Assembly (NCBI GenBank): GCA_977020255.1 | Contig: CDROCS010001101.1 | Location: forward strand, 62,001-126,000 | DNA length: 64,000 nt | Source of the DNA: Obrimoposthia wandeli | Lineage: Eukaryota | Reading direction: 5' to 3' | Part shown: positions 49,995 to 64,000 of the stretch, in pieces | Numbering within the stretch: the stretch's first letter is position 1 | How the letters are laid out: every line of letters starts with the position of its first letter | Translations under genes and position numbers: made by a program | The notes under the pieces: model-generated | Seen by the model: the letters and a program-made list of their open reading frames with translations, nothing else | What the model was told of the DNA's origin: nothing | The model's database searches: none

Positions 49995-50020
49995 TCGTCT
50001 TGGGATTAAACCCAAGACGA
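49995..50020. repeat. Perfect 10-bp inverted repeat
   Basis: TCGTCTTGGG-ATTAAA-CCCAAGACGA, with no T tract on either side. Confidence 0.75.
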
Positions 50021-50173
50021 GCGAAATTGAGATAAATAACAGACCTGTTATTTATCAATTAACTAGCTAGTTGTACCATAAATTTAATATCTCCAACTGT
50101 AATGTTAATGCCATTCTTTCTATTATGTTCGCCTTTCGGCCAAGTCGCTTATGTGATGTCCAGGTACTTAATT

Positions 50174-50305
50174 TTATGCGATAAAGTACAACGGATAACC
50201 TAAAGCAACTAAAAACACAATCCAAGAAATGCCTTCGGCAATGACATAGGCGTAAACAACGCCACAAGCGATATCTATAAGTTTTAGCGCACAAAACAGA
50301 ACTAT
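50174..50305 (-). pseudogene. Possible C-terminal fragment of a membrane protein
   Basis: Start-less 43-codon frame IVLFCALKLIDIACGVVYAYVIAEGISWIVFLVALGYPLYFIA*, hydrophobic. Confidence 0.3.
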
Positions 50306-50316
50306 TTAAAGATCTC

Positions 50317-50354
50317 AACAAGGCGATGATTTGATAATGAATTATCGCCTTGTT
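50317..50354. repeat. Perfect 11-bp inverted repeat, possibly attC-derived
   Basis: AACAAGGCGAT...ATCGCCTTGTT, with AAC and GTT termini. Confidence 0.6.
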
Positions 50355-50391
50355 ACTATCAAGAGACTGTAAATGACTGAGATAGAAAGAT

Positions 50392-51141
50392 ATGACACGG
50401 AAGAACATATTGATCACAGGCGCAAGTTCAGGGTTGGGCCGAGGTATGGCCATCGAATTTGCAAAATCAGGTCATAACTTAGCACTTTGTGCACGTAGAC
50501 TTGATAATTTAGTTGCACTGAAAGCAGAACTCTTAGCCCTCAATCCTCACATCCAAATCGAAATCAAACCTCTTGATGTCAACGAACATGAACAAGTCTT
50601 CACTGTTTTCCATGAATTCAAAGCTGAATTTGGTACGCTTGATCGTATTATTGTTAATGCTGGATTAGGCAAGGGCGGATCCGTCGGTACAGGTTTTTTC
50701 AAAGCTAATCTGCAAACAGCACAAACCAATTTTATTGCGGCGCTCGCACAGTGTGAAGCGGCGCTCGAAATTTTTAGGGCGCAAAATGCTGGGCATCTAG
50801 TAACGATTTCTTCTATCAGTGCTGTACGAGGATTCCGCCGTGCGTTAACTGTGTATGCAGCCACTAAAGCAGCACTAACATCATTAACGGAAGGCATCAG
50901 GATTGACGTGATGGATACGCCAATCAAAGTGAGTTGTGTCCATCCTGGATTTATTCGCACCGAGATGAATGAAAAAGTAAAAACAGCACCTTTCATGATA
51001 GATGCTGAAGCGGGTTGTAAAGCGATAGTGAAAGCAATTAATAAAGAAAAAGCGAATAGTTATGTACCAAGTTACCCTTGGGCTATTATGCATTTATTAC
51101 TACGTGTGGCTCCTACAAGTCTGATTCGAAAAATGAGTTAA
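50392..51141 (+). CDS. Short-chain dehydrogenase/reductase
   Basis: ITGASSGLG, NAG and YAATK motifs. Confidence 0.9.
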   Translation: MTRKNILITGASSGLGRGMAIEFAKSGHNLALCARRLDNLVALKAELLALNPHIQIEIKPLDVNEHEQVFTVFHEFKAEFGTLDRIIVNAGLGKGGSVGTGFFKANLQTAQTNFIAALAQCEAALEIFRAQNAGHLVTISSISAVRGFRRALTVYAATKAALTSLTEGIRIDVMDTPIKVSCVHPGFIRTEMNEKVKTAPFMIDAEAGCKAIVKAINKEKANSYVPSYPWAIMHLLLRVAPTSLIRKMS

Positions 51142-51177
51142 TACGCTATCGTTAAGATTATTGAGCTTGGGGTACAT

Positions 51178-51858
51178 ATGAACATCTTCTTGCATAAGTT
51201 AAATGCACATGGAAAATTTGATGGCCTTCTGACTAGGGTAGATAGTCTTTTTGATAAAGCACTCGAATGTATTGGTGAAAAACTGCCTTTGGAAGAAATT
51301 AATATTGATGTGATTATTTCTGAAGGTGACTTTGTAATACCTGAATTTGGTTTCTGTGGATACAGTCCATCATCGGGACAAATAATGTTGTTTTTTGATT
51401 TGAATAATGAAAATTTGGATACTTGTCTTGATGCCGAATTCATGCCGAGCCTTGGACATGAAATTCATCACTGCTTTCGACATAAAGGCGTTGGGTATGG
51501 TAAGACGCTTCAGGAAGCAGTAATAAGCGAAGGGTTAGCTTGCCACTTTGAAGTAGAGCTTAGGGATGGTGATGTTCCATTTTATGCACAAGCAATAAAC
51601 CAAGATATGATTGATGTCCTACATTCAAAAATGCTAAATGAAGCTGCTAATTTGACTTACGACCACAATGTTTGGTTTTTTGGGGCTGAGCCTGATTCAA
51701 TACCTTTACATGCGGGATATACATTGGGATATTATATTGTTTCAAAATATATAAAAGCAACTGGAACTCCTGCATCACAGCTATGGAATGTATCGGCAAA
51801 TGAGTTTTTTGATGGCTCTTATGCTACAGAGAATAGATTGACCTTTAAGGCATTGTAA
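51178..51858 (+). CDS. DUF2268-type predicted Zn-dependent peptidase
   Basis: HEIHH plus downstream SEGLA, and GYTLGY motif. Confidence 0.8.
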   Translation: MNIFLHKLNAHGKFDGLLTRVDSLFDKALECIGEKLPLEEINIDVIISEGDFVIPEFGFCGYSPSSGQIMLFFDLNNENLDTCLDAEFMPSLGHEIHHCFRHKGVGYGKTLQEAVISEGLACHFEVELRDGDVPFYAQAINQDMIDVLHSKMLNEAANLTYDHNVWFFGAEPDSIPLHAGYTLGYYIVSKYIKATGTPASQLWNVSANEFFDGSYATENRLTFKAL

Positions 51859-51961
51859 TTTAAGTTTAATATGGTCTTTAAGATAGGTATTAAATTGGAA
51901 TTTTATTGGTGTTATACGAGATTTCATATAACAGCTGTCAGTAGAGAATAAGGTATGTGGT

Positions 51962-52543
51962 ATGAATTGGTTATCCGAATCCCAACTAAAAGGTAATTAC
52001 GTTACTCTAGAACCACTGGGTATTGAACACCTTGATGAACTAAAAGAGGCCGTTTTGGATGGCGAATCTTGGAAGTTATGGTATGCAAATGTTCCGTCCC
52101 CTGAACGAATGAGTGAATATGTAAGAGAAGCTATTACAGAATCAAAGAAAGGTAATATTGCATTTGCGATAAGATGTAATAATACAAATAAAGTTGTAGG
52201 AACCAGCAGGTTTTATAACGTCGATGCTAAAAATAAGCGGGCGATGTTAGGCTATACATGGTATTCATCGTCAGTGCGACGATCACCAGTTAATACAGAG
52301 TGCAAATTACTTTTACTCTTGCACGTTTTTGAAAAGCATTCTGCAATAGCTGTTGAGTTTAGAACTCACTTCTTTAACCAAAGTTCTAGAAAAGCTATAG
52401 AAAGGCTAGGAGCTAAGCAAGATGGTATTATTCGAAACCATCAAATTTTAAAAGATGGCTCTATTAGAGATACAGTTGTTTACTCAATTATTAATTCTGA
52501 GTGGCCAGCGGTAAAAAACAATTTGCAGAGTAAGCTCGGCTAA
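51962..52543 (+). CDS. GNAT acetyltransferase, RimJ/RimL-like
   Basis: VTLEPL, LGYTWY and SRKAIERLGAKQDG motifs; stop lies within GGCTAAC. Confidence 0.88.
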   Translation: MNWLSESQLKGNYVTLEPLGIEHLDELKEAVLDGESWKLWYANVPSPERMSEYVREAITESKKGNIAFAIRCNNTNKVVGTSRFYNVDAKNKRAMLGYTWYSSSVRRSPVNTECKLLLLLHVFEKHSAIAVEFRTHFFNQSSRKAIERLGAKQDGIIRNHQILKDGSIRDTVVYSIINSEWPAVKNNLQSKLG

Positions 52544-52725
52544 CAAAAATTTATTATGGGCATTTTCTAATCATGGTGAAAATTATCAGCTTATGAATGT
52601 TAGTAACTGTTATTGATATGTCGTAGGGCTCAACAAATAATAGATTTCGGTTCGCTACGTAAAATCTAGCGAACTAACTCCCAACTTTTTCTCATGACAA
52701 CTAATCGGAAACTGTCATATCTATC

Positions 52726-53751
52726 CTACATTGGGAGCAAAATGATTTTCCCATGTATAGGTGTAGATTTAGACTCAATAAGTTCAATAGCGGATTGAAC
52801 TTGATCTAATGGAATACAGCGGTCTACATCTAGTTGTATCTTATTGATTATGAAATGGTCTAACATCATCGTAAATTTTTCACGTCTGACATCTTTACCA
52901 ACCGTGTTTTCCCAGTAACGTAAGAAAAATGTACTGAAATCGATATTCTGGTTTTTCGCATATTCATAAAAACGAGGCTCATAAAATTCCAGTGAAAGAG
53001 TTCCATAGTTGATATACCGACCCTTGATACCCACGGTATGAATCAGTTCAGTGCCCACTTTGCCTCCAATAGCATCAAATGCTACATTGGGTCTAGGCAA
53101 ATTGCGCTGTTGAATTTGAGTAATTAGATCACCTTTAGCATCTATGACAATGCTTGAATCATATGCATAAGTTTCAGGTTTTGAAGTTACAACAAGAAGA
53201 GTAAACCCCAGCGATGAAGATAACTGCGCAAAAATCTTACCTATAGCAGAACTACCTGCATTGACAATCAGTACATCATCTCTTGTCAACTGAGCGACTT
53301 CTGTGGTCAAAACCCAAGCTGTTAACGCATTAATATATAATTGGCATGCGTAGCCGTTTTCCAGATGGTGAGGAATATGAAAGAGGTTATCTGGTGATAC
53401 ATCGATATATTTCTGCCAAGTACCACTGGTAGCCACAACGACTCTTTGACCTATGATAAATTTTTCATGGTTAGACTCGATGACTTGCCCGACGGCTTCG
53501 AATCCAGGAACTCTGGGTGGCTGATGACTATGCCGATATTGACCTATGCCATGAATAGACAACAGATCGCTTGGGTTAATATTTGTAGCTTCGATTTTGA
53601 CCCTAATGTTATCTTTTTCAAGCGATTCCAACGGTAAATGCTCTACCGTCAATGAGTCCTTTGGGTGCCCGAAACAGATCTGGTTAATTCTTGTATTTGT
53701 CGTGGTGTCAGTCATCTCTTGACCATAAGTGGTTGAATTATTAACTTGCAT
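52726..53751 (-). CDS. MDR-family (quinone/enoyl reductase-like) oxidoreductase
   Basis: INPSDL, VPGFEAVG, NAGSSAIG and GKIILL motifs. Start may be the ATG at 53715. Confidence 0.85.
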   Translation of the reverse strand: MQVNNSTTYGQEMTDTTTNTRINQICFGHPKDSLTVEHLPLESLEKDNIRVKIEATNINPSDLLSIHGIGQYRHSHQPPRVPGFEAVGQVIESNHEKFIIGQRVVVATSGTWQKYIDVSPDNLFHIPHHLENGYACQLYINALTAWVLTTEVAQLTRDDVLIVNAGSSAIGKIFAQLSSSLGFTLLVVTSKPETYAYDSSIVIDAKGDLITQIQQRNLPRPNVAFDAIGGKVGTELIHTVGIKGRYINYGTLSLEFYEPRFYEYAKNQNIDFSTFFLRYWENTVGKDVRREKFTMMLDHFIINKIQLDVDRCIPLDQVQSAIELIESKSTPIHGKIILLPM

Positions 53752-54182
53752 CTAGGTATACTGGCGTTTTTTATCGTGAATGTCCATCTCTATACTTACC
53801 AGTGATGTGGCTCACTTTTTCCCCTTTTTACGTTAGAGTTGCTACTCACTCAAAATATGTTCATATCGGTTTGCCATAGATTTTCTAATTTCACATGATT
53901 TGCAAGAATGAATCTAAAACGGTGTCCAGTATTACTTAATCACTTCATTCCTGTTTGTAAACGGTAGTAGCCAAAATATGAACGAAGTTATTCTAGAAAA
54001 GAAAATATTTTGATGAACTGCATAGGTCGACCCATGAAATCATCCTACATCGATGACTTTATCTTAAAATTAAGAATGCTACGAAGAAAGCCAATTTCAA
54101 TAAGTCACTACAATTTATAAGATAGTGTGTAAATTTTTCTTTGACTATGCCAAAATCACAAACAATAAATTCGTAAAAGGAT

Positions 54183-54974
54183 ATGTACATGGTTGATGGT
54201 CAACTAATTATGCCTAAAGGTAATGTGATAAAACATCAATGGATAAGCTCATTTTTCCTTCTTGGTAAAACTACTCGTGATTATTGGTTATATGTTCCTA
54301 AACAATATGACCCTGAAACACCGATTGGTTTAATGGTATTCCAAGACGGTGAGGAATACGTGGATGAGAATGGCTGTTTCAAAGCACCTCAAGTATTTGA
54401 TGAATTAATCCATAAAGAAGCAATACCACCTATCATTGGATTATTCGTAAACTCAGGGCATAACGCCAACGTGCCTAGCCCAAAATCACATTGGGAATCT
54501 AGCTTTCGTAGTTATGAATATGATTCACTAGGAGATGAGTACACAAGATTCCTAATTGAGGAACTAATACCTGAAATAGGTAAAGAATATAACCTCACTA
54601 ATAACCCTAAGATGAGAGCTATATGCGGAATGTCATCAGGAGGCATCTGTGCATTTACAGCAGCATGGGAACGCCCCGATTACTTTCATAAGGTAATGAG
54701 TCACATTGGAAGTTTTACCGATATTAGAGGCGGTCATGTTTATCCCAATCTAGTTCGTAAATCTTCTAAAAAGGACATTAAGGTATTTTTACAAGATGGC
54801 AGCAACGACCTTGATATTCATTTTGGTAATTGGTGGTTAAGTAATTTACAAATGGAAAGTGCTCTTAAATTTAAGGGGTATATTCATAAATTTGTTGGTG
54901 GTACTGGAGGGCATGACGGGAAACATGGTGGTTCTATTTTTGCTGAATCATTGATGTGGCTTTGGGGGGAATAA
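54183..54974 (+). CDS. Alpha/beta-hydrolase esterase (enterochelin-esterase-like)
   Basis: LMVFQDG, GMSSGG nucleophile elbow and GGHDGKHG motifs. Confidence 0.85.
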   Translation: MYMVDGQLIMPKGNVIKHQWISSFFLLGKTTRDYWLYVPKQYDPETPIGLMVFQDGEEYVDENGCFKAPQVFDELIHKEAIPPIIGLFVNSGHNANVPSPKSHWESSFRSYEYDSLGDEYTRFLIEELIPEIGKEYNLTNNPKMRAICGMSSGGICAFTAAWERPDYFHKVMSHIGSFTDIRGGHVYPNLVRKSSKKDIKVFLQDGSNDLDIHFGNWWLSNLQMESALKFKGYIHKFVGGTGGHDGKHGGSIFAESLMWLWGE

Positions 54975-55226
54975 CATCAAATAAATACTTCAGATGAATA
55001 TAAATTATATATTCAAGTAGCCAAAATTATATACCCGTAGCGGTCTTAGGATCCCAATAATAGCCCGTACCTGTTGAAGGACGAAATTGACCGCAGGTTA
55101 TGGTTAATCGGGGGGAGAATCAAATAGACTGTTTACTTCCCCTACAAATCATTGTGTTAAGTGGTTAAATTGAATTTTATTGTCATAGTGAAATACGTGT
55201 GATGGCGCCATTAATAGGTTAGGAAA

Positions 55227-55796
55227 ATGGAACTAAAACTACAGCAATTAATTAAGTCGGTTCCAGAGTTAATGGAAACAGCTGAAGCGTGCAGAGATGT
55301 TGGTTTGCCTAATTTCTACATTGCTGGCGGTGCGATTACTCAATTAATTTGGAACAGCTTGGATGAAAAAGAGTTGCTCGATAAAGTCAAAGATTTTGAC
55401 ATTGTTTATTTTGATAAGACCAATACTGTTTCAGAAGAGTCTTTTGAAAGAAGTATTGCTAAACGTATACGGCATTGTGTCAAAGTGGATCTTAAGAATC
55501 AAGCTACAATGCATGAGCGATATGTCCAAAGGTTTGGTTGCTCAATCCTAGCATATGTTCGTGTGGAACAAGGTATTGAGTCTTGGTTACCTGCGTTTGC
55601 TATAGGCTTTACCCTTGACTCTTATGGAAATATAACTATCTATGCTCCTTATGGTTTGGAAGATGCTTTCAGTATGTTAGTGAAACCTAATAAGCGAGCA
55701 ATGACAGAGAGCAATTACAACAACATGACCGCTGGCTATAAGGCTCGTTGGCCGAAAGTAAAGGTGCTCCCATGGAATCCATCTGCTAATAAATGA
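55227..55796 (+). CDS. Nucleotidyltransferase family protein (DUF925-like), cassette
   Basis: IAGGAITQLIWN, KDFDIVYFD, KNQATMH and APYGLED motifs; preceded by GTTAGGA and running into an attC. Confidence 0.8.
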   Translation: MELKLQQLIKSVPELMETAEACRDVGLPNFYIAGGAITQLIWNSLDEKELLDKVKDFDIVYFDKTNTVSEESFERSIAKRIRHCVKVDLKNQATMHERYVQRFGCSILAYVRVEQGIESWLPAFAIGFTLDSYGNITIYAPYGLEDAFSMLVKPNKRAMTESNYNNMTAGYKARWPKVKVLPWNPSANK

Positions 55797-55911
55797 CTTA
55801 AGAGTGATTCGTAACGCGTAGCATTTTTACTATGTGTTTGGTTAAGCTAGTAAGGTGGTGTTTAATGGCTAGGGTATCAGTAAGTTATTCACTTAATGGC
55901 AAGGGTTAATA
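55784..55911 (+). mobile_element. Long Vibrio-type attC (128 bp), R'' mutated to AAT
   Basis: TGCTAAT-AAATGACTTAAGAGTGATTCGTAACGCGTAGCATTTTTACTATG...TAAGGTGGT...CACTTAATGGCAAGG-GTTAATA resembles Vibrio superintegron repeats (from recall). Confidence 0.8.
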
Positions 55912-56188
55912 TTACAGACGCATCAATAAAATTTTAAGGCTATAAAATTGATGAAGTCTCATGTCTGGTTCAAGGCCGGCATAGTTATCATATATGACTC
56001 ATCTTAGATGCCTCTCCTCATCGTCATCATACAATCAATTAGCTTGGTCCCAAGATGGTTATTGTTTCAAACTCGATAATAAAGCGTATTGACTCCTCCA
56101 AGGGGCTCCGTAATAAATTAGTGTAAATAATGGTACTTGAAAATTCAGATGCAGTAGACTCGAATAAACAGTGATTTAGGAAGTAGAT

Positions 56189-57034
56189 ATGATACTGACA
56201 GCATTAATTGATAATACTCGATTAGATGATAGAACAGACCTTGCGGTTGAGAGAGGGCTATCTTTTCACATAAAAACGATGGGGCAAGAAATTCTATTTG
56301 ATGCTGGTAGCAGTAAAGCTTTTTGTGATAATGCTATTTTATTAGGTATTAAGATGGAAGATGTAGATGCTGCCATTATTTCACATCGTCATCATGACCA
56401 CTGTAATGGTGTAACGCATTTCCTCGACCGTAATTCTAAGGCTCAGGTCTATTTTCGCGAGTGTGCAGAAACTGATTATAGTTTTAAAGCGTTTGGCTTC
56501 AAAAGTAATGTCGGTATTGATAAGACCCTATTAGATAAAGACCGTAGACGATTCACCTTCATTGATAAAACCACTGAGATAAGTCCAAATATTTTTATCA
56601 TTACAAGTATTAGTCGTAAGTATGATCAACCAAAAGGTAATAAATATCTGTTTACTGATTCAGGTGATGGCTGTAAACCAGACACTTTTGATCATGAGCT
56701 ACTCTTAGTTATTAAAGAAGATGATGGTCTTATCGTATTTACTGGTTGTGCTCATAGCGGTGTACTTAATATGATTGAAACCGCGATTGAATTGTTTCCG
56801 AACACCAGAATTAAAGCTGTTGTCGGTGGATTTCATTTGGTCGGGTTACCTTTGTTTAATAGCATTGGCGGAACTAAGAAAGACATTGAAGCAATCGGTG
56901 AAACCATGCTCACTTATCCAATCGATAAGCTCTATACTGGCCATTGTACTGGCATGAAAGCCTATGAAATATTAAAAGACGTACTTGGTGATACCCTTGA
57001 GTACTTCCCAACTGGGCGTCGTATCACTATCTAA
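56189..57034 (+). CDS. Metallo-beta-lactamase-fold hydrolase
   Basis: ILFDAG, SHRHHDH (HxHxDH), TGCAHSG, GGFHL and GHCTG motifs. Confidence 0.88.
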   Translation: MILTALIDNTRLDDRTDLAVERGLSFHIKTMGQEILFDAGSSKAFCDNAILLGIKMEDVDAAIISHRHHDHCNGVTHFLDRNSKAQVYFRECAETDYSFKAFGFKSNVGIDKTLLDKDRRRFTFIDKTTEISPNIFIITSISRKYDQPKGNKYLFTDSGDGCKPDTFDHELLLVIKEDDGLIVFTGCAHSGVLNMIETAIELFPNTRIKAVVGGFHLVGLPLFNSIGGTKKDIEAIGETMLTYPIDKLYTGHCTGMKAYEILKDVLGDTLEYFPTGRRITI

Positions 57035-57109
57035 TTAAAAACACCCTAATGACTTAGTCTGCCAATTCAATGCTACCTTTATAGTAAACAAACACATAAG
57101 GGCATTGAA

Positions 57110-57730
57110 ATGGATTTTGATTGGGTAGAGTGGTTTGGTTATCTCGCATCGTTAGTTGTACTCGTGTCCCTTACTATGACGTCAATTATCAAGCTGCGGG
57201 TCATTAACTTCATTGGCTGTATTCTATTTGCGATATTTGCCTATTTTATTGATTCCTTACCGACCATGTTAATGAACCTAGGGATAGCCGGCATCAATGT
57301 TTACTTCTTATGGAAAATTCATTCGACCGAGGAACAGTTCAAACTGATTGTGGCAGCGGTTCATTCTGAATATTTTGAGCATTTCATAGCAACAAACCTA
57401 AGTGACATTGAACGCCAAACCACAGTAGATGAACTTCGAGAAGCCAATACGGTGTTTTATATGCTCAGGAATAACAGTATAGCGGGTGTACTAGCCGGGA
57501 ATAATAATGCACAAGGCGAACTGTCAGTGTTACTGGACTTTGTTACACCTGAATTCCGTGATTTTAAGTTGGCGGATTATTACTATAAGTCTCACCCTGA
57601 TGTACTCAAACACAGGGGGGTCAATACACTGATTGCTAAAGCTACGACACCGGAACATAGAGACTACTTACTCAAAGTGGGTTTTCAGGTTGCTGGTGGC
57701 TTTGAAGGTGTTTATCAGAAACAGCTTTAA
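57110..57730 (+). CDS. YgjV-like membrane protein
   Basis: Three N-terminal TM helices (GYLASLVVLVSLTM..LRVINFIG) followed by a soluble C-terminal domain. Confidence 0.7.
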   Translation: MDFDWVEWFGYLASLVVLVSLTMTSIIKLRVINFIGCILFAIFAYFIDSLPTMLMNLGIAGINVYFLWKIHSTEEQFKLIVAAVHSEYFEHFIATNLSDIERQTTVDELREANTVFYMLRNNSIAGVLAGNNNAQGELSVLLDFVTPEFRDFKLADYYYKSHPDVLKHRGVNTLIAKATTPEHRDYLLKVGFQVAGGFEGVYQKQL

Positions 57731-57853
57731 GGGTGCTAGCTAGTATCCTCCTACCTCGTTCAGATTTACTTAACTCTAGGTTAACTTCATTCTAATATTC
57801 TTAACTTACAGTGAGGGGTATACTCTCGGCTCTTAGAAAGGGAGAGCCAAAAC

Positions 57854-58042
57854 ATGTTTGAATTCGTTACTAATTCCTCATTAAAAACACACCTATCACT
57901 ACCGGCTTATTGTGTCTTACGCCGCAGCTTCTCTAATGACAATGCTGTGCGCTCTAAGGCTGATCATATCAGTCCAGGAGCAAAGGCGGACAATCGTATA
58001 GATCACTATACTCGTAGCATGATGGTGCAAGCTGCAGCTTAA
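57854..58042 (+). CDS. Hypothetical 62-aa ORF
   Basis: GGAGAG RBS-like sequence upstream; no recognised motif. Confidence 0.3.
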   Translation: MFEFVTNSSLKTHLSLPAYCVLRRSFSNDNAVRSKADHISPGAKADNRIDHYTRSMMVQAAA

Positions 58043-58116
58043 TTTAAACGCCTGCCTAGGTATTTGACCATTAAAAAAACACATCACATTAACCGATGTA
58101 AACAGGGAACATCCCC

Positions 58117-59514
58117 ATGTATGAAAATGAAGAAAAACTAACGAAAGCATTTGTTATTGCCGCCATCATTTGGGGCGTTATAGGCATGTGCATGGGTTTA
58201 ATGGCAGCTCTACAGCTATATTTACCGCAATTGAATTTTGCCAATGAGTATATAAATTTCGGGAAAATAAGACCCTTGCATACTAACGCTATCATCTTTG
58301 GATTGGTTTGCAACTTTATAATCGGTCTGTCGTTATACATAGTGGCAAAAACATCCGTCGTGAATCTAGTATCTAAAGGTTTATCGTGGTTCTTGTTCTG
58401 GGGTTGGCAGATAACATTGGTAATCGGTCTTATCTCAATCGCTTTAGGGTATACATCAACCAAAGAATACGCCGAATTTGAGTGGCCAATTGATATCGCT
58501 ATTGTGGTTCTCTGGTTAACGTTTGGATATATCTTCTTTGGAACGCTAGCGAAAAGAAAAACAAAGCATATATTTGTTTCAAACTGGTTTAGTGGCGGTG
58601 TCATTATTGTCATCGGCTTAATTTACTTAATCAATAATTTAGCCATTCCCGTGTATGCATTTAAAGGTTACTCCATATTTTCTGGTGCGAGTGATGCACT
58701 TGTACAGTGGTGGTGGGGACATAATGCAGTTGGCTTCTTATTGACAGCTGGTTTTGTGGGTACCAATTACTATTTCATTCCCAAGTTAGTTAATAGACCC
58801 ATTTATTCATATCGACTGTCTTTAATTACTTTTTGGGGCTTAATCGGCTTTTATACTTGGGCTGGTACACACCATTTACTCTTTACATCCGTTCCATCTT
58901 GGATTCAAAATATTGGCGTAGTGATGTCTATTCTATTATGGATCCCGTCATGGGCTGGCGCATTTAACGCTTGGATGACGTGTACTTCCAATAAAGAAGA
59001 ATTGAAAACTAATCCTGTTGTCTGGTTTTTCTTATCGTCAATCGCCTATTACGCATTAGCAACGTTTGAAGGGCCTCTTATGGCTATCAGATGGTTCAAT
59101 ATGATAGCTCACAATACGAGTTGGGTTATCGGACATGTTCACTCTGGCGCGCTAGGTTGGGTTGGCATGACGTGTATAGCAACCTTCTACTATTTCATTC
59201 CTAAGTTATACAAAAAAGAACTCTACTCATATGGCTTAGTTAAGGTGCATTTTGTACTCGCTCATATAGGCGTATTGTTCTACATAGTCTCCCTGTGGAT
59301 CGGTGGCATAGGTCAAGGTGTTAAATCGTTAAGCCTTACTGAGTCTGGTTCTCTTACTTATTCGTTTGTTGATATTTTACGATTTATGGAACCTTACATG
59401 CTCGGACGTGCCATTGGTGGCGCGCTGTTTATCTTGGGTATGTTAGTGATGGTATATAACCTCATCATGACGGTGAAAAAACCACAAAAAGTAGTTATTG
59501 AAGGAGCATATTAA
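58117..59514 (+). CDS. ccoN: cbb3-type cytochrome c oxidase subunit I (divergent paralog)
   Basis: RPLHTN, KEYAEFEWP, WWWGHNAVGF, YTWAGTHH, TFEGP and GHVHSG motifs. Confidence 0.9.
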   Translation: MYENEEKLTKAFVIAAIIWGVIGMCMGLMAALQLYLPQLNFANEYINFGKIRPLHTNAIIFGLVCNFIIGLSLYIVAKTSVVNLVSKGLSWFLFWGWQITLVIGLISIALGYTSTKEYAEFEWPIDIAIVVLWLTFGYIFFGTLAKRKTKHIFVSNWFSGGVIIVIGLIYLINNLAIPVYAFKGYSIFSGASDALVQWWWGHNAVGFLLTAGFVGTNYYFIPKLVNRPIYSYRLSLITFWGLIGFYTWAGTHHLLFTSVPSWIQNIGVVMSILLWIPSWAGAFNAWMTCTSNKEELKTNPVVWFFLSSIAYYALATFEGPLMAIRWFNMIAHNTSWVIGHVHSGALGWVGMTCIATFYYFIPKLYKKELYSYGLVKVHFVLAHIGVLFYIVSLWIGGIGQGVKSLSLTESGSLTYSFVDILRFMEPYMLGRAIGGALFILGMLVMVYNLIMTVKKPQKVVIEGAY

Positions 59515-60131
59515 TGGAAGAGTCAATATCCAAGTCAGTAATGGCTTTTATCACTATCACGACAGTCGTGGTTTTATTCTCATTCTTTGTGTGGGTTTTC
59601 CCAGGGTTCTTCTTCACTAACGATCTTAAAGAAATAACGACAGCCAAACCATACACAGCTTTAGAATTAGCAGGGCGTGATGTTTATATGGCTGAAGGTT
59701 GTGTGGCATGCCATACCCAGATGGTGAGAAACTTGGAACCGGAAAGAAAAAGATACGGTCGCCCTAATAAAATGGAAGATGATGTTTATGAGTTTAACTT
59801 TTTGTGGAGCTCACAAAGAACTGGCCCTGATTTAACTAATATTGGTTTGAAGTACACAGAAGGCTGGCACAAACAGCACCTCATCAATCCTCAGGCCGTT
59901 GTACCAGCCTCAATCATGCCGCAATATCCGTGGCTGTTTGAAAAGCAACTTAACGTTAGTCATGTTATTGCTTCAATGAAAGCGATGAAAAAACTAGGTG
60001 TTCCGTATACAGACACGCAAATTGAAAATTCATCAAGCAAAGTTAAAGGTAAAACAAAAGGTGATGCCCTTGTTGCTTACTTGATGAGTCTTGGCGTAGA
60101 TACGCGTGAAAAAGGTGGGGATTTAAATTAA
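59514..60131 (+). CDS. ccoO: cbb3-type oxidase subunit II
   Basis: EGCVACHTQMVR, RTGPDL and SIMPQYPWL motifs; 1-nt overlap with ccoN. Confidence 0.92.
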   Translation: MEESISKSVMAFITITTVVVLFSFFVWVFPGFFFTNDLKEITTAKPYTALELAGRDVYMAEGCVACHTQMVRNLEPERKRYGRPNKMEDDVYEFNFLWSSQRTGPDLTNIGLKYTEGWHKQHLINPQAVVPASIMPQYPWLFEKQLNVSHVIASMKAMKKLGVPYTDTQIENSSSKVKGKTKGDALVAYLMSLGVDTREKGGDLN

Positions 60132-61597
60132 TGGAATCCATGAACATATTATCAAGCGTACTATCGATTATCTTCTTTTTTATCATGGTTGCAGTTATTT
60201 ATTCACAGTTCCGCAAGAACAAAACTGCAGACAGTAATAAAACAGTAGAGCAATTTGATGGGATAGATGAAAAAGATGCACCAATTCCTAAGGTTTTCTT
60301 TGTTGCGTATCTTATTGCATTTATAGGCGCAATTGTTTACGTCCTTCTATATCCAAGTTTAGCTTCTTGGAAAGGGTTTATCGGTTGGACCGAGAATGAT
60401 GACGCGTATGTGGCTAAATCAATTGATATAAACAATAACATTAACGCCATAATCAATGCGAATACCGATGAACAAGTCTTTACGCTGTTACAAAAAGATC
60501 CGCTTGTTTTACAGAGTGGTAAATCGTTATTTGGTGATAATTGTTCTGCTTGTCATGGTCAAGATGCTAAGGGGCAATATAACTACCCGAGTTTAGTTGA
60601 TAAAGACTGGTTATACGGCGGCTCACCTCAAGATGTCTATACGACCATACATAATGGACGTAAGGGTAAAATGCCAGCTTGGAAAGGTGTACTGAGCGGT
60701 AAAGACATAGATGAGCTTACCCAGTATGTTTCTGATCTAAATAAAGGACCATTTAAAAGCAATGCGCTTTTCGATGCTAATTGTTCATCATGTCACGGCA
60801 AAGATGCTCAAGGTACACATGGCGTAGGAGCACCTAACTTAACGGATGATATCTGGCTTCATGGTTCAACCAAAGCTGATATCAAACGTAATATTGAGAA
60901 TGGCATGAGTAACGAAATGCCTGATTTTGGTGAGCGACTTAGCAGAAATCAAATATTGTCTTTAACCTCTTATATTGTGTCCCTACAGAGTGAACCACAA
61001 GACAATATCGATTTTATGCAAGCGAACACTTATATCTTCTCTCGAAATGAACAGCAATTGCCAGCGGTGCTAACGACTTGTGTGGCCTGTCATGGTACGG
61101 ATGGTCTTGGTGTTATTCCTGGAACGCCTAAGCTAGCCGGATTAAAGCAAGCGTATATCTATAACCAATTGCACTTGTTTGTATCTGGTTTAAGAAACAA
61201 TACGACGATGCAAAATATAGTTGCTGATTTAGATGTGAAAGACAAGTTACTTGCTGCTAGCTATTTTAGCTCTCTCGATTCACCGGCGATAAGTAAAGTC
61301 ATCCTAGATAAATCAGCAGACGGTCTCATTAAAGATCCTACTGAGCGCCTGATATTCCAAGGTGATTGGCAACGCGCTATTCCTGCTTGTTCTACTTGTC
61401 ACGGTCAAGAAACGCAAGGTAGCCCATCATTTCCAAGATTGGCAGGTCAATCATCGGACTATTTAGAGAAGCAATTATTTGACTGGAGAACGGGCGATAG
61501 AACCGGTGATCAAGGTCATATGATGCAAAACGTCGTTAACAAGCTAACAGATGATGAAATTAAATCCCTGTCGAAATATTTATCAAAAATGAAATAA
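60131..61597 (+). CDS. CcoP-like subunit III fused to a cytochrome c4-like diheme (four CxxCH), with a CcoQ-like N-terminal helix
   Basis: CSACH, CSSCH, CVACH and CSTCH; FDGIDEKDAPIP CcoP N-terminal motif; c4 motifs PKLAG and FPRLAGQSSDYLEKQL. Confidence 0.85.
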   Translation: MESMNILSSVLSIIFFFIMVAVIYSQFRKNKTADSNKTVEQFDGIDEKDAPIPKVFFVAYLIAFIGAIVYVLLYPSLASWKGFIGWTENDDAYVAKSIDINNNINAIINANTDEQVFTLLQKDPLVLQSGKSLFGDNCSACHGQDAKGQYNYPSLVDKDWLYGGSPQDVYTTIHNGRKGKMPAWKGVLSGKDIDELTQYVSDLNKGPFKSNALFDANCSSCHGKDAQGTHGVGAPNLTDDIWLHGSTKADIKRNIENGMSNEMPDFGERLSRNQILSLTSYIVSLQSEPQDNIDFMQANTYIFSRNEQQLPAVLTTCVACHGTDGLGVIPGTPKLAGLKQAYIYNQLHLFVSGLRNNTTMQNIVADLDVKDKLLAASYFSSLDSPAISKVILDKSADGLIKDPTERLIFQGDWQRAIPACSTCHGQETQGSPSFPRLAGQSSDYLEKQLFDWRTGDRTGDQGHMMQNVVNKLTDDEIKSLSKYLSKMK

Positions 61598-61611
61598 CCT
61601 GTGCGCGAATG

Positions 61612-61687
61612 AAAGGCTAATAGAACAAAGGCTAATAGAACAAAGGCTAATAGATCGAAGGTTAACAGATTGAAAGGTTAATAGGAT
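61612..61687. repeat. 15-bp tandem repeat, 5 copies
   Basis: AAAGGCTAATAGAAC x2, AAAGGCTAATAGATC, GAAGGTTAACAGATTG, AAAGGTTAATAGGAT. Confidence 0.9.
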
Positions 61688-61696
61688 ACCGTAATT

Positions 61697-62950
61697 ATGA
61701 AAATGAATAAGTTAAGAAGGGAAATCATTAAAGCTGGTGGCTATGTCGCTTTAGCTGCTGCACCATTAACGGCTTTCTCTAAAGAGTTTATGAAAGACGG
61801 CAAGATGTATTCAGATGGTGAAGGGGTGAGCTATGCAGATGGCCCTAAGCCTGTATTAAGCAATTTTCCGCAAAAAGATAATGTTGTGATCGTACATACT
61901 CGACCACCTCATCTTGAAACGCCTTTTAATGTATTTAATGAAGGACTAATAACACCAAACAACCGTTTCTTTGTTCGTTATCACTTAGCTGACGTCCCTG
62001 TTGCCATAGACACTGATAAATACACTATTACTATTTCAGGGGCTGTTGATAAGGAAGTCACATTAAGTTTGGCTGAATTAAAGTCAATTGAAGGCCAACA
62101 AGAAATTGTAGCTGTACAACAGTGTACTGGTAATAGCCGAGGTTATTCATCACCACGTGTTTTTGGTGCGCAATTAAGTAATGGCGCTATGGGTAATGCG
62201 AAGTTCAAAGGTGTGCCACTTAAAAACGTGTTAGCGAAAGCGGGTATTTCTAGTGCAGCGACAAGTGTCATCATTGATGGTTTAGATAAGCCAGTTAGAG
62301 AGACGACTCCAGACTTTCAAAAATCATTACCTATTGATCATATTATGACAGGCGAACCTATGCTTGTTTGGGAAATGAATGGTGAACCTTTACCATTTTT
62401 AAATGGCTTTCCAGTGAAATTAATCGTTCCGGGTTGGTATGCAACATATTGGGTTAAGCATGTATCGCACCTTAAAGTCATAGAGGACAAGTTTGATAAC
62501 TTTGATGCGTTCTTTATGACAACTGCATACCGTCTACCTGATAATGATTCTAAGAGTGAATTACCAACTGCCAGAGCGAAAAAGACGTTACCTGTAAATC
62601 GATTCCCAATAAGAAGTTTTGTTACTAGTTTAGAAAATGGTGATGAAGTTAACGCTGCAACCAGTATTGAAATTAAAGGGATAGCTTTTGATAGTGGTAG
62701 TGGTATCAAAAAAGTTGAAGTTTCAATCGATGGTGGGAATAAGTGGATGCAAGCAGCGCTTGGTGAAAATCTTGGTCGCTTTTCCTTTCGAGGTTGGAAG
62801 TTAAGTCATAGCTTCAATGAAAAAGGCAGAACGCTTGTGATGGTAAGAGCAACAGGTAAGAGTGGTGAGACACAACCTGTTAATGCATCTTGGAATCATG
62901 GTGGTTATAACCGAAACGCGATTGAACGAACAAGTATTAAGGTGGTTTAA
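61697..62950 (+). CDS. Tat-exported molybdopterin sulfite dehydrogenase, SorA-like
   Basis: LRREIIK twin-Arg signal; FFVRYHL, QCTGNSR (Mo-ligating Cys), GAMGNA and AYRLPD motifs. Confidence 0.88.
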   Translation: MKMNKLRREIIKAGGYVALAAAPLTAFSKEFMKDGKMYSDGEGVSYADGPKPVLSNFPQKDNVVIVHTRPPHLETPFNVFNEGLITPNNRFFVRYHLADVPVAIDTDKYTITISGAVDKEVTLSLAELKSIEGQQEIVAVQQCTGNSRGYSSPRVFGAQLSNGAMGNAKFKGVPLKNVLAKAGISSAATSVIIDGLDKPVRETTPDFQKSLPIDHIMTGEPMLVWEMNGEPLPFLNGFPVKLIVPGWYATYWVKHVSHLKVIEDKFDNFDAFFMTTAYRLPDNDSKSELPTARAKKTLPVNRFPIRSFVTSLENGDEVNAATSIEIKGIAFDSGSGIKKVEVSIDGGNKWMQAALGENLGRFSFRGWKLSHSFNEKGRTLVMVRATGKSGETQPVNASWNHGGYNRNAIERTSIKVV

Positions 62951-63553
62951 ATGCGGTTTTTACTTATTATATTAGCGCTATGTTCATTGACTGTTAAAGC
63001 TGAGATCGTATCTATTACCTTGCCTATGGATAATACCAAGCTTAAGCCGTCGATATTACCAGGGTATGGCCTCGCGCAATCTAAATGTCACCTTTGTCAT
63101 TCAGTTGATTACGTGATGTATCAACCACCAGAGATGGATCTAAAAGAGTGGACTGGTGAGATGTATAAAATGCGTAATGCCTATGGTGCACCTATCAGTA
63201 TGGGGGAGGCTAAGGTTATTGCCGCTTATTTGTCAGTTGCTTATGGCTCTGCAAAAGAAACGGATGCAGAAATAATGGCCTTAACTAAACTCGCTAGCAC
63301 CAAAAAAATATATCAGCCTGATAACTTAGATGTGAAATCACTCTTATCTGATAATGATTGTTTAACATGTCATAAAGATGCGGGCGCTTCTTCTATTAAA
63401 GACATACGAGCTAAATATGAAGGAACGGATAATGCGGTTGATAGATTGGGAGTGGCTATTAAGTCAGGTGGTCTTGGCATGCCTAAACCACCTATCAATC
63501 GCCATGAATCAGAGGCGATTGCAAAATACATCCTAGGGGAAAGTACGAAATAG
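62951..63553 (+). CDS. SorB-like cytochrome c with a second heme domain
   Basis: Signal peptide; CHLCHSVDYVMYQPP and KMRNAYGAPI motifs; second CLTCH; starts immediately after the sorA stop. Confidence 0.82.
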   Translation: MRFLLIILALCSLTVKAEIVSITLPMDNTKLKPSILPGYGLAQSKCHLCHSVDYVMYQPPEMDLKEWTGEMYKMRNAYGAPISMGEAKVIAAYLSVAYGSAKETDAEIMALTKLASTKKIYQPDNLDVKSLLSDNDCLTCHKDAGASSIKDIRAKYEGTDNAVDRLGVAIKSGGLGMPKPPINRHESEAIAKYILGESTK

Positions 63554-63583
63554 ACCATTTTTGACTACACTTTATCTTCCGAT

Positions 63584-63620
63584 AAAAAGGCCCTGAGTAT
63601 TTAACGCTTAGGGCCTTTTT
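63584..63620. terminator. Intrinsic terminator of the cco-sor operon
   Basis: AAAAAGGCCCT...AGGGCCTTTTT. Confidence 0.82.
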
Positions 63621-63822
63621 ACCATAAATTTAATCTATCAAAATCATAGCGTTAATACTATTACCCTTACTATATTCAGCCATAACTAGTACCTACCTTT
63701 TTGTAAAATACAATCAAACACAACAAAACGCTTCAATACATGAATATAACAGTCGGCGTTCTACCTATACGGAACCGATAGATCATTGAGCGTTGTAATT
63801 TAATATGAAAGTAGGTGAAACG

Positions 63823-64000
63823 ATGAGCTTTTGGACAAAACTATTTGGTGGTGCTACTGCAGAGCCTATTGATGCATTGGGTTCTGCAGTGGATAGAATC
63901 TTTACTAATGATGAAGAACGCATGCAGGCACAAGCGGTGCTCGATAAAATAGCCCAGCAACCAGCCATTCTGCAGGCCGAGATTAATAAGATTGAAGCTC
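63823..64000 (+). CDS. 3TM-holin-like protein (3'-truncated; absent from the ORF track)
   Basis: MSFWTKLFGGATAEPIDALGSAVDRIFTNDEERMQAQAVLDKIAQQPAILQAEINKIEA; AGGTG RBS; frame open to the window end. Confidence 0.7.
   Translation, partial: MSFWTKLFGGATAEPIDALGSAVDRIFTNDEERMQAQAVLDKIAQQPAILQAEINKIEA

Follow-up and report, generated by a model that had tools for sequence, protein, structure and literature searches.

A second cbb3-type oxidase and a sulfite dehydrogenase share one gene cluster

The DNA analysed here, referred to as the window, is a stretch of 64,000 nt (positions 62001-126000 of contig C1101) from the Obrimoposthia wandeli assembly GCA_977020255.1, and the system under study is a group of five genes near its 3′ end that encode a divergent cbb3-type oxidase and, directly behind it, a SorAB-type sulfite dehydrogenase. 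The genes, designated ccoN', ccoO', ccoP'-c4, sorA and sorB', lie on a single strand with overlapping or abutting ends except for a lone 99-nt gap, and end at an intrinsic terminator (Table 1). This gene content and layout had been proposed in an initial annotation made from the sequence alone, and all of it was borne out by the open reading frame (ORF) map and by folding. The annotation had further stated that no ccoGHIS or sox genes are adjacent, and profile assignments likewise placed none in the flanks that were examined. Families were assigned throughout with Pfam and NCBIfam profiles, the latter with their curated equivalog cut-offs.

The bacterium that carries the operon is a Moritella, its CcoP' being 97% identical to the copy of Moritella dasanensis ArB 0140. 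The assembly (G000; 1.35 Gb in 6912 contigs) is a mixture with many bacteria. Because over 20 distinct full-length ccoN genes occur in it, as do two strains of Moritella that are ~96% identical (contigs C1101 and C5637), it is best described as host-plus-microbiome or metagenome-like and not as a single genome.

Table 1. Positions of the operon and of related features. Numbers without a prefix are window positions; prefixed numbers belong to the locus or contig named.
Feature	Position	Strand	Description
ccoN'	58117-59514	+	465 aa; subunit I of the second, divergent cbb3-type oxidase
ccoO'	59514-60131	+	205 aa; monohaem subunit II; 1-nt overlap with ccoN'
ccoP'-c4	60131-61597	+	488 aa; tetrahaem subunit III; 1-nt overlap with ccoO'
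ccoP'-sorA spacer	61598-61696	+	99 nt; tandem repeat
sorA	61697-62950	+	417 aa; molybdopterin sulfite dehydrogenase catalytic subunit, predicted Tat export
sorB'	62951-63553	+	200 aa; two-domain cytochrome; abuts sorA
Intrinsic terminator hairpin	63583-63621	+	A-tract, 16-bp stem, T-tract; 3′ of sorB'
5′ leader/promoter region	58007-58116	+	inherited along with the operon
tsdA-linked module	L015:5984-9474, L018:485-1615 (G000:C998:185983-190615)		ccoN'O'P'c4-tsdA, another bacterium of the same assembly
Pentahaem-CcoP loci	L108:7623-12176; L109:7665-12181; L110:14649-19324		
Split ccoP'c4	L105:9016-10469		Vibrio sp. SS-MA-C1-2, 119 + 359 aa
Split ccoP'c4	L106:9229-10484		Logan contig DRR018010, 161 + 226 aa

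The oxidase retains its catalytic residues and carries a c4-like domain

CcoN' matches PF00115 (COX1) at 322 bits and the solved cbb3 CcoN chains 9g6b and 3mk7 with E values of 1e-156 and 1e-154. Every metal ligand is kept (H55, H202, H252/H253, H340 and H342), as is Y246, the cross-linking tyrosine of helix VII; with the histidine ligands of haem b, haem b3 and CuB and this tyrosine in place, the protein belongs with the cbb3-type (C-family) haem-copper oxidases. Against the equivalog profile TIGR00780, however, it scores 550 bits, under the 583 cut-off, whereas the canonical copies of the same hosts reach 750-760 bits, and CcoN' is therefore a divergent paralogue and not the canonical orthologue. 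The other two subunits score above their curated cut-offs. CcoO' matches PF02433 (FixO) at 214 bits and NF011055 at 237 bits (cut-off 218) and has one haem motif, CVACH at residue 63; CcoP' reaches 221 bits with TIGR00782 over residues 31-286 (cut-off 180) and combines FixP_N with further cytochrome c domains. Both thus have the make-up expected of cbb3 subunits, a FixO domain with one CxxCH in the former and a FixP_N anchor plus dihaem domain in the latter.

CcoP' contains four CxxCH motifs (C138, C218, C317 and C420), distributed over a membrane-anchored dihaem CcoP (residues ~1-290) and a fused c4/TsdB-like dihaem domain (~295-488, nt 61013-61597). Residues 295-488 match cytochrome c4 over both of its domains (6q2u, 3e-23; 1etp, 4e-22), and the TsdB part of the TsdBA fusion protein is matched nearly as well (5lo9, 2.6e-20). 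Across eight orthologues the residues C317/C320/H321, M360, C420/C423/H424 and M464 are invariant, and we take this domain, on the strength of its predicted haem ligands, to be a complete dihaem cytochrome c4. No separate ccoQ gene is present, ccoO' and ccoP' overlapping by 1 nt. A fusion of CcoQ to CcoP' was also considered and could not be established: the FixQ profile gave just 14 bits (E 0.047) on the N-terminus of CcoP', and in an alignment with the canonical subunits of the host the N-terminal helix falls on helix 1 of CcoP and not on CcoQ. Full-length CcoP-c4 fusions are rare, with ~10 clusters at 90% identity among 5.8 billion proteins. Among ~185,000 species representatives at least six have one, a count that is a lower bound since the scan used two peptide patterns.

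SorA is paired with a two-domain SorB'

SorA consists of PF00174 and PF03404 and aligns with Starkeya novella SorA (2blf_A) at an E value of 1e-121; its NF052245 score is 552 bits, under the cut-off of 600. Within the FFVRYH, QCTGNSRG and AYRLPDN motifs, C143, R94, H96 and Y278 correspond to C104 (the Mo ligand), R55, H57 and Y236 of 2BLF, and the N-terminus resembles a signal peptide with RR at residues 7-8 (twin-arginine). The Mo-pterin and dimerisation domains, the active-site residues and the twin-arginine translocation (Tat)-type signal together identify SorA as a predicted member of the SorA family of sulfite dehydrogenases.

SorB' abuts sorA in the manner of SorB genes, which encode a small monohaem cytochrome (~80 aa mature), but it has a second domain that is absent from classic SorB. 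The protein begins with a Sec signal and has CHLCH at residue 46 (C46) and CLTCH at 137 (C137). Its N-terminal domain is SorB-like (NF052246, 90.7 bits on residues 18-98, cut-off 93; 2blf_B, 1.9e-15 on residues 22-98), and its C-terminal domain (~125-197) is c551/c552-like, with structures matching at 1e-5 over residues 128-197. This architecture forms 14 clusters in the same 5.8 billion proteins, all of them from Moritella, Shewanella or Vibrio. We speculate that the extra domain may serve docking.

The host also encodes a canonical cbb3 oxidase

A separate canonical ccoNOQP, whose presence the initial annotation had asked to see confirmed, lies ~110 kb downstream on the same contig. There, ccoNOQP (C1101:231162-234352; ccoN 754 bits, ccoO, ccoQ of 59 aa and ccoP of 305 aa) is followed by a gene for a P-type ATPase (ccoI), ccoS and fnr, the whole locus spanning G000:C1101:231162-239081. 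CcoN', CcoO' and CcoP' are 47%, 42% and 35% identical to the respective canonical subunits. Besides CcoN' (534-550 bits), each of four host genomes tested encodes a canonical CcoN (750-760 bits), so the CcoN'O'P' oxidase is an extra paralogue. The operon lacks the canonical ccoNOQP-ccoGHIS layout, having no ccoQ, no ccoGHIS in its flanks and no FNR box, features that the canonical locus does have.

The five genes are inherited together in three genera

The initial annotation had made its reading depend on the genes being conserved together, and they are: the five genes occur as a block in three genera with differing flanks. The block ccoN'O'P'c4-sorA-sorB' was found in Moritella (M. dasanensis, M. 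marina ATCC 15381 and the second strain on contig C5637), in Shewanella (two assemblies of S. psychropiezotolerans, and Shewanella UCD-KL12) and in Vibrio (Vibrio TBV020 and V. mediterranei isolate 50) as well as on the metagenome (Logan) contig DRR018010, and its flanking genes change from genus to genus. Nucleotide homology between Moritella and Shewanella, at 86%, runs from window position ~58007, about 110 nt before ccoN', to the 3′ end of sorB' and then stops; similarity to M. dasanensis and to the C5637 strain likewise stops at the sorB' stop codon. Because the flanks differ and homology is limited to the operon, the five genes move as one unit. The ratio of non-synonymous to synonymous substitution rates (dN/dS) between Moritella and Shewanella is 0.05-0.17, and all five genes are under purifying selection. 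An exact-sequence look-up returned no match for SorA or for the proteins of the tsdA-linked module on contig C998.

The surroundings of the operon were compared as well. It sits at the edge of variable DNA (window 50000-58000 and 63554-64000, compared with loci L025, L016/L019 and L112). Upstream, M. dasanensis has ~2.2 kb extra between a gene for a metallo-β-lactamase (MBL)-fold protein and one for a membrane protein; M. marina shares the downstream GTA-holin-like gene and has SelO upstream instead. We considered the upstream MBL-fold gene (56189-57034) as a persulfide dioxygenase that might supply sulfite and rejected it: the proteins that match it best in structure are uncharacterised hydrolases, and other genera do not keep it beside the operon.

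A sister lineage carries tsdA in place of sorAB'

In a second type of cluster, the order ccoN' (465 aa)-ccoO' (205 aa)-ccoP'c4 (484-491 aa) is followed by a dihaem cytochrome of 357-376 aa that replaces sorAB'. Clusters of this type were found in Vibrio 10N.286.49.B1/C2, V. inusitatus, Vibrio E150_011 and Vibrio SS-MA-C1-2, and on contig C998. The dihaem cytochrome is a TsdA homologue (5lo9, 1e-65; Allochromatium vinosum TsdA, 4wq7, 1e-32) with two CxxCH motifs and an IQGCF motif that aligns with that of TsdBA, features by which it belongs to the TsdA family; the Cys of the TsdA IQGCF motif is presumably the ligand of haem 1. These clusters contain no tsdB gene. Taking both types together, all 13 CcoN'-clade loci have sorAB' or tsdA immediately downstream. 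The module on contig C998 has transposases of the IS5 family and of IS240/IS6 type directly upstream and a PCu(A)C copper chaperone gene ~2.7 kb downstream.

In a CcoN tree (midpoint root, for drawing only; L006, in which no motif was found, left out) the 15 CcoN' sequences are monophyletic (100/99) and the nine that are sorAB-linked form a subclade (100/100); the tsdA-linked sequences make up the remainder of the clade, with unresolved branching. True canonical CcoNs lie on a long separate branch. The nearest outgroup to CcoN', at 58-62% identity, is not the canonical oxidase but an alternative cbb3 of Vibrio, Photobacterium and Shewanella, in which a gene for a monohaem cytochrome c comes first, followed by ccoN (469 aa), ccoO and the gene of a pentahaem CcoP (718-723 aa), ccoQ being absent. 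Among the outgroup sequences, P0168, P0189 and the third ccoN of Vibrio sp. 10N.286.49.B1 (G004) were checked as pentahaem-CcoP oxidases, the other rows being assigned by similarity only. None of the three nearest-outgroup loci examined has an adjacent dehydrogenase. Such oxidases are widespread in Vibrio (harveyi group), Photobacterium and Shewanella and apparently unstudied. Vibrio sp. 10N.286.49.B1 has three cbb3 loci; two of them, the tsdA-linked and the pentahaem locus, are divergent, with 8.5 kb between them (L110, G004:C2:514000-533999). Genes for an AraC-family regulator, an MFS transporter, an aminotransferase, a rhodanese and an ECF sigma factor occupy the interval, which could be a sulfur-related regulatory island.

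Leader, spacer and terminator

At a distance of 18 nt before the start of ccoN' there is an inverted repeat, ACATC-N9-GATGT (58081-58099), which folds into a small hairpin. It is kept in both Shewanella copies, and the Vibrio copies have a related ACATTAA...GTAAA motif; the repeat is the sole candidate for an operator, or alternatively for a hairpin of the 5′ untranslated region. A search for an FNR/Anr box (TTGAT-N4-ATCAA, at most two mismatches) found none upstream of ccoN' in Moritella and no conserved match across the orthologues. A 62-aa ORF at 57854-58042 was considered as a small subunit or leader peptide; it has no Pfam match, and since its reading frame is disrupted in M. dasanensis and a stop codon cuts it short in Shewanella, it does not count as a conserved gene.

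Within the operon, the ccoP'-sorA spacer forms a variable-number repeat that comprises ~4 copies of the 15-nt unit AAAGGCTAATAGAAC at 61612-61684. No stable structure was predicted for it (z = +1.2), nor does it contain a terminator-like site. It measures 99 nt in the window, 68 nt in M. marina, 87 in the C5637 strain, 143 in M. dasanensis, 85 in Shewanella and 21-32 in Vibrio, and a variant with a 30-nt deletion is present in a public run; the range of 68-143 nt within Moritella arises because repeat copy number differs between strains. The terminator hairpin behind sorB' has a predicted energy of -23.9 kcal/mol (z = -6.2), and none of 200 shuffled sequences was as stable. Marine metatranscriptome contigs are 95-98% identical over ccoO', ccoP', sorA and sorB', that is, on both sides of the spacer. 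The five genes are putatively co-transcribed.

A possible electron route from sulfite to oxygen

The gene content suggests a continuous path. SorA, with its Mo-pterin and exported by Tat, would oxidise periplasmic sulfite to sulfate, and the two electrons would enter SorB' at its SorB-like haem and move on, in the Moritella and Shewanella proteins, to the c551-like second haem. They would next reach the dedicated second cbb3 oxidase through the cytochrome c4 domain, which is joined covalently to its CcoP'. The two haems of CcoP' and the one of CcoO' would relay them to haem b of CcoN' and on to its haem b3-CuB site, the place of O2 reduction. Such a route would need neither quinone, bc1 nor a soluble carrier; energy would be conserved at the oxidase only, and ccoGHIS-type assembly factors would be borrowed from the canonical cbb3 locus. 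The c4 domain would be an adaptor built into the oxidase for the periplasmic sulfur-oxyanion dehydrogenase encoded with it, which in the sister lineage is TsdA (thiosulfate to tetrathionate), and the whole would constitute a self-contained, horizontally mobile respiratory module. We think it reasonably probable that the operon does encode a hard-wired path of this kind, in which SorAB' and the c4 domain link sulfite to cbb3 and O2 and neither quinone nor bc1 takes part. In its favour are the architecture and intact active sites of the five proteins, their co-inheritance, the exchange of sorAB' for tsdA beside the same oxidase, the CcoN' phylogeny, the low dN/dS values, the presence of a canonical oxidase in each host besides this extra one, the metatranscriptome contigs and the precedents in Campylobacter jejuni and Thermus thermophilus. 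The sequences show the gene content, the integrity of the catalytic residues, the domain fusion, the strict linkage and the purifying selection; which way the electrons flow, whether they do so exclusively and to what physiological end are inferred.

A more far-reaching proposal is also conceivable, and we offer it tentatively. The oxidase may be a "plug-in" unit whose c4/TsdB-like domain serves as a universal docking adaptor and binds SorAB' or TsdA in a supercomplex, stable or semi-stable, the donor having been swapped while oxidase and adaptor were kept and the unit spread horizontally among cold and deep-sea gammaproteobacteria. If this were so, the complex would in effect be a membrane-bound sulfite:O2 (or thiosulfate:O2) oxidoreductase.

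Several observations weigh against a hard-wired path. The path is deduced only from gene adjacency and domain homology. A complex prediction of SorB' (residues 18-200) with the c4 domain of CcoP' (295-488), run without controls, gave a score of 0.01, which speaks neither for nor against binding. A source of sulfite is not apparent from Xsc or SoxB, neither of which was found in the four host genomes (best scores of 327 bits against a cut-off of 676 and of 97 bits against 550, respectively); these hosts are not Sox lithotrophs. The haem count proposed in the initial annotation is correct for this strain (one in CcoO', four in CcoP' and two in SorB') and fails for the second SorB' haem of the Vibrio copies, where the motif, CxxCH only in Moritella and Shewanella, is CxxC[D/G/N] and the Met region is missing. 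Because the motif is degenerate there, the second SorB' haem is no obligatory link. The NCBIfam scores of CcoN', SorA and SorB' fall just short of the equivalog cut-offs, and two of the 13 loci have ccoP'c4 broken into a pair of ORFs (Table 1), either through decay (a frameshift pseudogene) or through sequencing error. Finally, the Moritella spacer, at 68-143 nt, could hold an internal promoter, and among the short metatranscriptome contigs, for which DNA carry-over is possible, none crosses the ccoP'-sorA gap.

The alternative that fares best is nonetheless an unlikely one. The second cbb3 would be a general high-affinity oxidase whose fused c4 replaces soluble c4 and is fed mainly by bc1, SorAB' or TsdA would feed the common cytochrome c pool, and the linkage would reflect co-regulation, for example at low O2 in sulfur-rich niches. 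S. novella SorAB uses soluble cytochrome c, and cytochrome c4 is the normal carrier from bc1 to cbb3, with c4 and cbb3 subunits both present in PDB entries 8smr and 8snh. The phylogeny lends this account further support: because the nearest relatives of CcoN' have a pentahaem CcoP and no adjacent dehydrogenase, extended CcoPs evidently exist without a dedicated donor. It does not, however, account for a sulfur-oxyanion dehydrogenase directly downstream in 13 of 13 loci, across three genera and two enzyme types, nor for horizontal transfer that covered exactly five genes, nor for a two-domain SorB' that the protein-cluster search placed nowhere outside these clusters.

We consider it improbable that the module is mainly protective and not bioenergetic, with a sulfite- or sulfide-tolerant oxidase or O2 scavenger co-expressed with SorAB' or TsdA to detoxify reactive sulfur oxyanions, its electron supply not tied to the dehydrogenase. 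There is an analogy in methanotrophs, which are reported to co-express sulfide:quinone oxidoreductase and a ba3-type oxidase under H2S (PMC10205796; bioRxiv 10.1101/2022.08.31.505896), and with Sox and Xsc not found in the hosts sulfite is unlikely to be a major growth substrate. Yet protection would leave unexplained both the c4/TsdB-like acceptor fused to CcoP' and the gain of a cluster-specific extra domain by SorB', and the CcoN' ligand motifs that were checked show no change. That the adjacency is functionally meaningless, or that the genes are decaying remnants, can be set aside as very improbable: the two split ccoP' genes could be read in this way, but here the ORFs are all intact, the dN/dS values are those of purifying selection, the linkage is strict across genera and the catalytic residues are kept.

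A dedicated path from sulfite to the second cbb3 oxidase, if correct, matters for several reasons. How dehydrogenases are wired to oxidases in branched chains is mostly obscure because the soluble cytochrome c pool hides it. Here the wiring is seemingly written into the genes, the usual cbb3 donor c4 being fused to the oxidase and co-inherited with one of two dehydrogenases. For marine heterotrophs, the operon may point to a means of drawing energy from the sulfite and thiosulfate released by organosulfur and sulfide turnover at low O2, or of removing these compounds. It can be tested genetically in strains that grow in culture (Moritella marina ATCC 15381, Vibrio mediterranei and Shewanella psychropiezotolerans) and could be of use for the study of dedicated electron routes, natural respiratory supercomplexes and modular oxidase evolution.

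Comparison with known systems

SorAB enzymes hand sulfite electrons to cytochrome c. Each part of the operon comes from a known family and sulfite respiration itself is already known; the novelty lies in an oxidase that is dedicated, carries the fused domain and is inherited with the dehydrogenase. A full-text search, with subscription journals outside its scope, found no description of this operon or of a natural CcoP-c4 fusion. The combination for which no description was found comprises a dedicated cbb3 paralogue, the CcoP-c4 fusion, the cluster-specific two-domain SorB', obligatory linkage to SorAB' or TsdA and horizontal spread as a unit.

With canonical cbb3 oxidases (Pseudomonas stutzeri 3MK7 and the host copy) CcoN'O'P' has in common the three core subunits, the metal ligands and the helix-VII Tyr, and CcoP' shares two N-terminal helices and the dihaem domain with canonical CcoP. 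It differs from canonical ccoNOQP in having no ccoQ gene, no adjacent ccoGHIS or fnr, and an extra c4 domain on CcoP'. The pentahaem-CcoP oxidases are closer in that they, too, are without ccoQ and have a CcoP extended by haem domains, but they have no adjacent dehydrogenase, and their CcoP extension is longer and not simply c4. In pathogenic Neisseria, a trihaem CcoP carries one extra haem domain that is tied to nitrite reduction, with the partner outside the operon. This is a natural precedent for an extra haem domain, from which CcoP' differs in that its extension is a c4 dihaem domain and its partner a sulfur-oxyanion dehydrogenase. S. novella SorAB (2BLF) and sorA-sorB' share the gene order, the SorA active site, the Tat-type signal and the SorB domain; the extra c551/c552-like domain of SorB' and the position of the genes behind a cbb3 oxidase set the latter apart.

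The TsdBA fusion of Marichromatium purpuratum (5LO9) is a case in which an acceptor is fused to one redox partner, as it is in CcoP'c4. The TsdB-like domain is fused to TsdA in Marichromatium and to CcoP' in the CcoN' clusters, the cluster of the window having SorAB' and not TsdA. That TsdB is fused to TsdA in one case and a TsdB/c4-like domain to the oxidase in the other, with the other partner next door, may be regarded as an argument of the Rosetta-stone type. PMC9237845, citing Kurth et al. 2016, describes TsdB as the protein to which TsdA directly passes its electrons and c4-type cytochromes as donors to cbb3, and presents direct transfer from TsdB to cbb3 as proposed, not demonstrated.

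The initial annotation did not recognise the arrangement as a characterised system. For the operon as such this stands, no description having been found, but the principle of passing electrons from SorAB through cytochrome c to an oxidase is known from two heterotrophs. In Campylobacter jejuni, SorAB reduces cytochrome c, which feeds a cb-type oxidase (Myers & Kelly 2005, as cited in PMC4178425), and in Thermus thermophilus electrons pass from SOR to a two-domain dihaem c550, to c552 and to ba3/caa3 (PMC3561395). In both chains, as proposed here, periplasmic sulfite oxidation is coupled through c-type cytochromes to a terminal oxidase without bc1, and the two-domain dihaem carrier of Thermus resembles SorB'. 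Those organisms, however, use general oxidases and soluble carriers that are encoded elsewhere, whereas in the operon described here the oxidase is a dedicated paralogue, the c4 cytochrome is fused to CcoP', and all parts are encoded in one five-gene unit.

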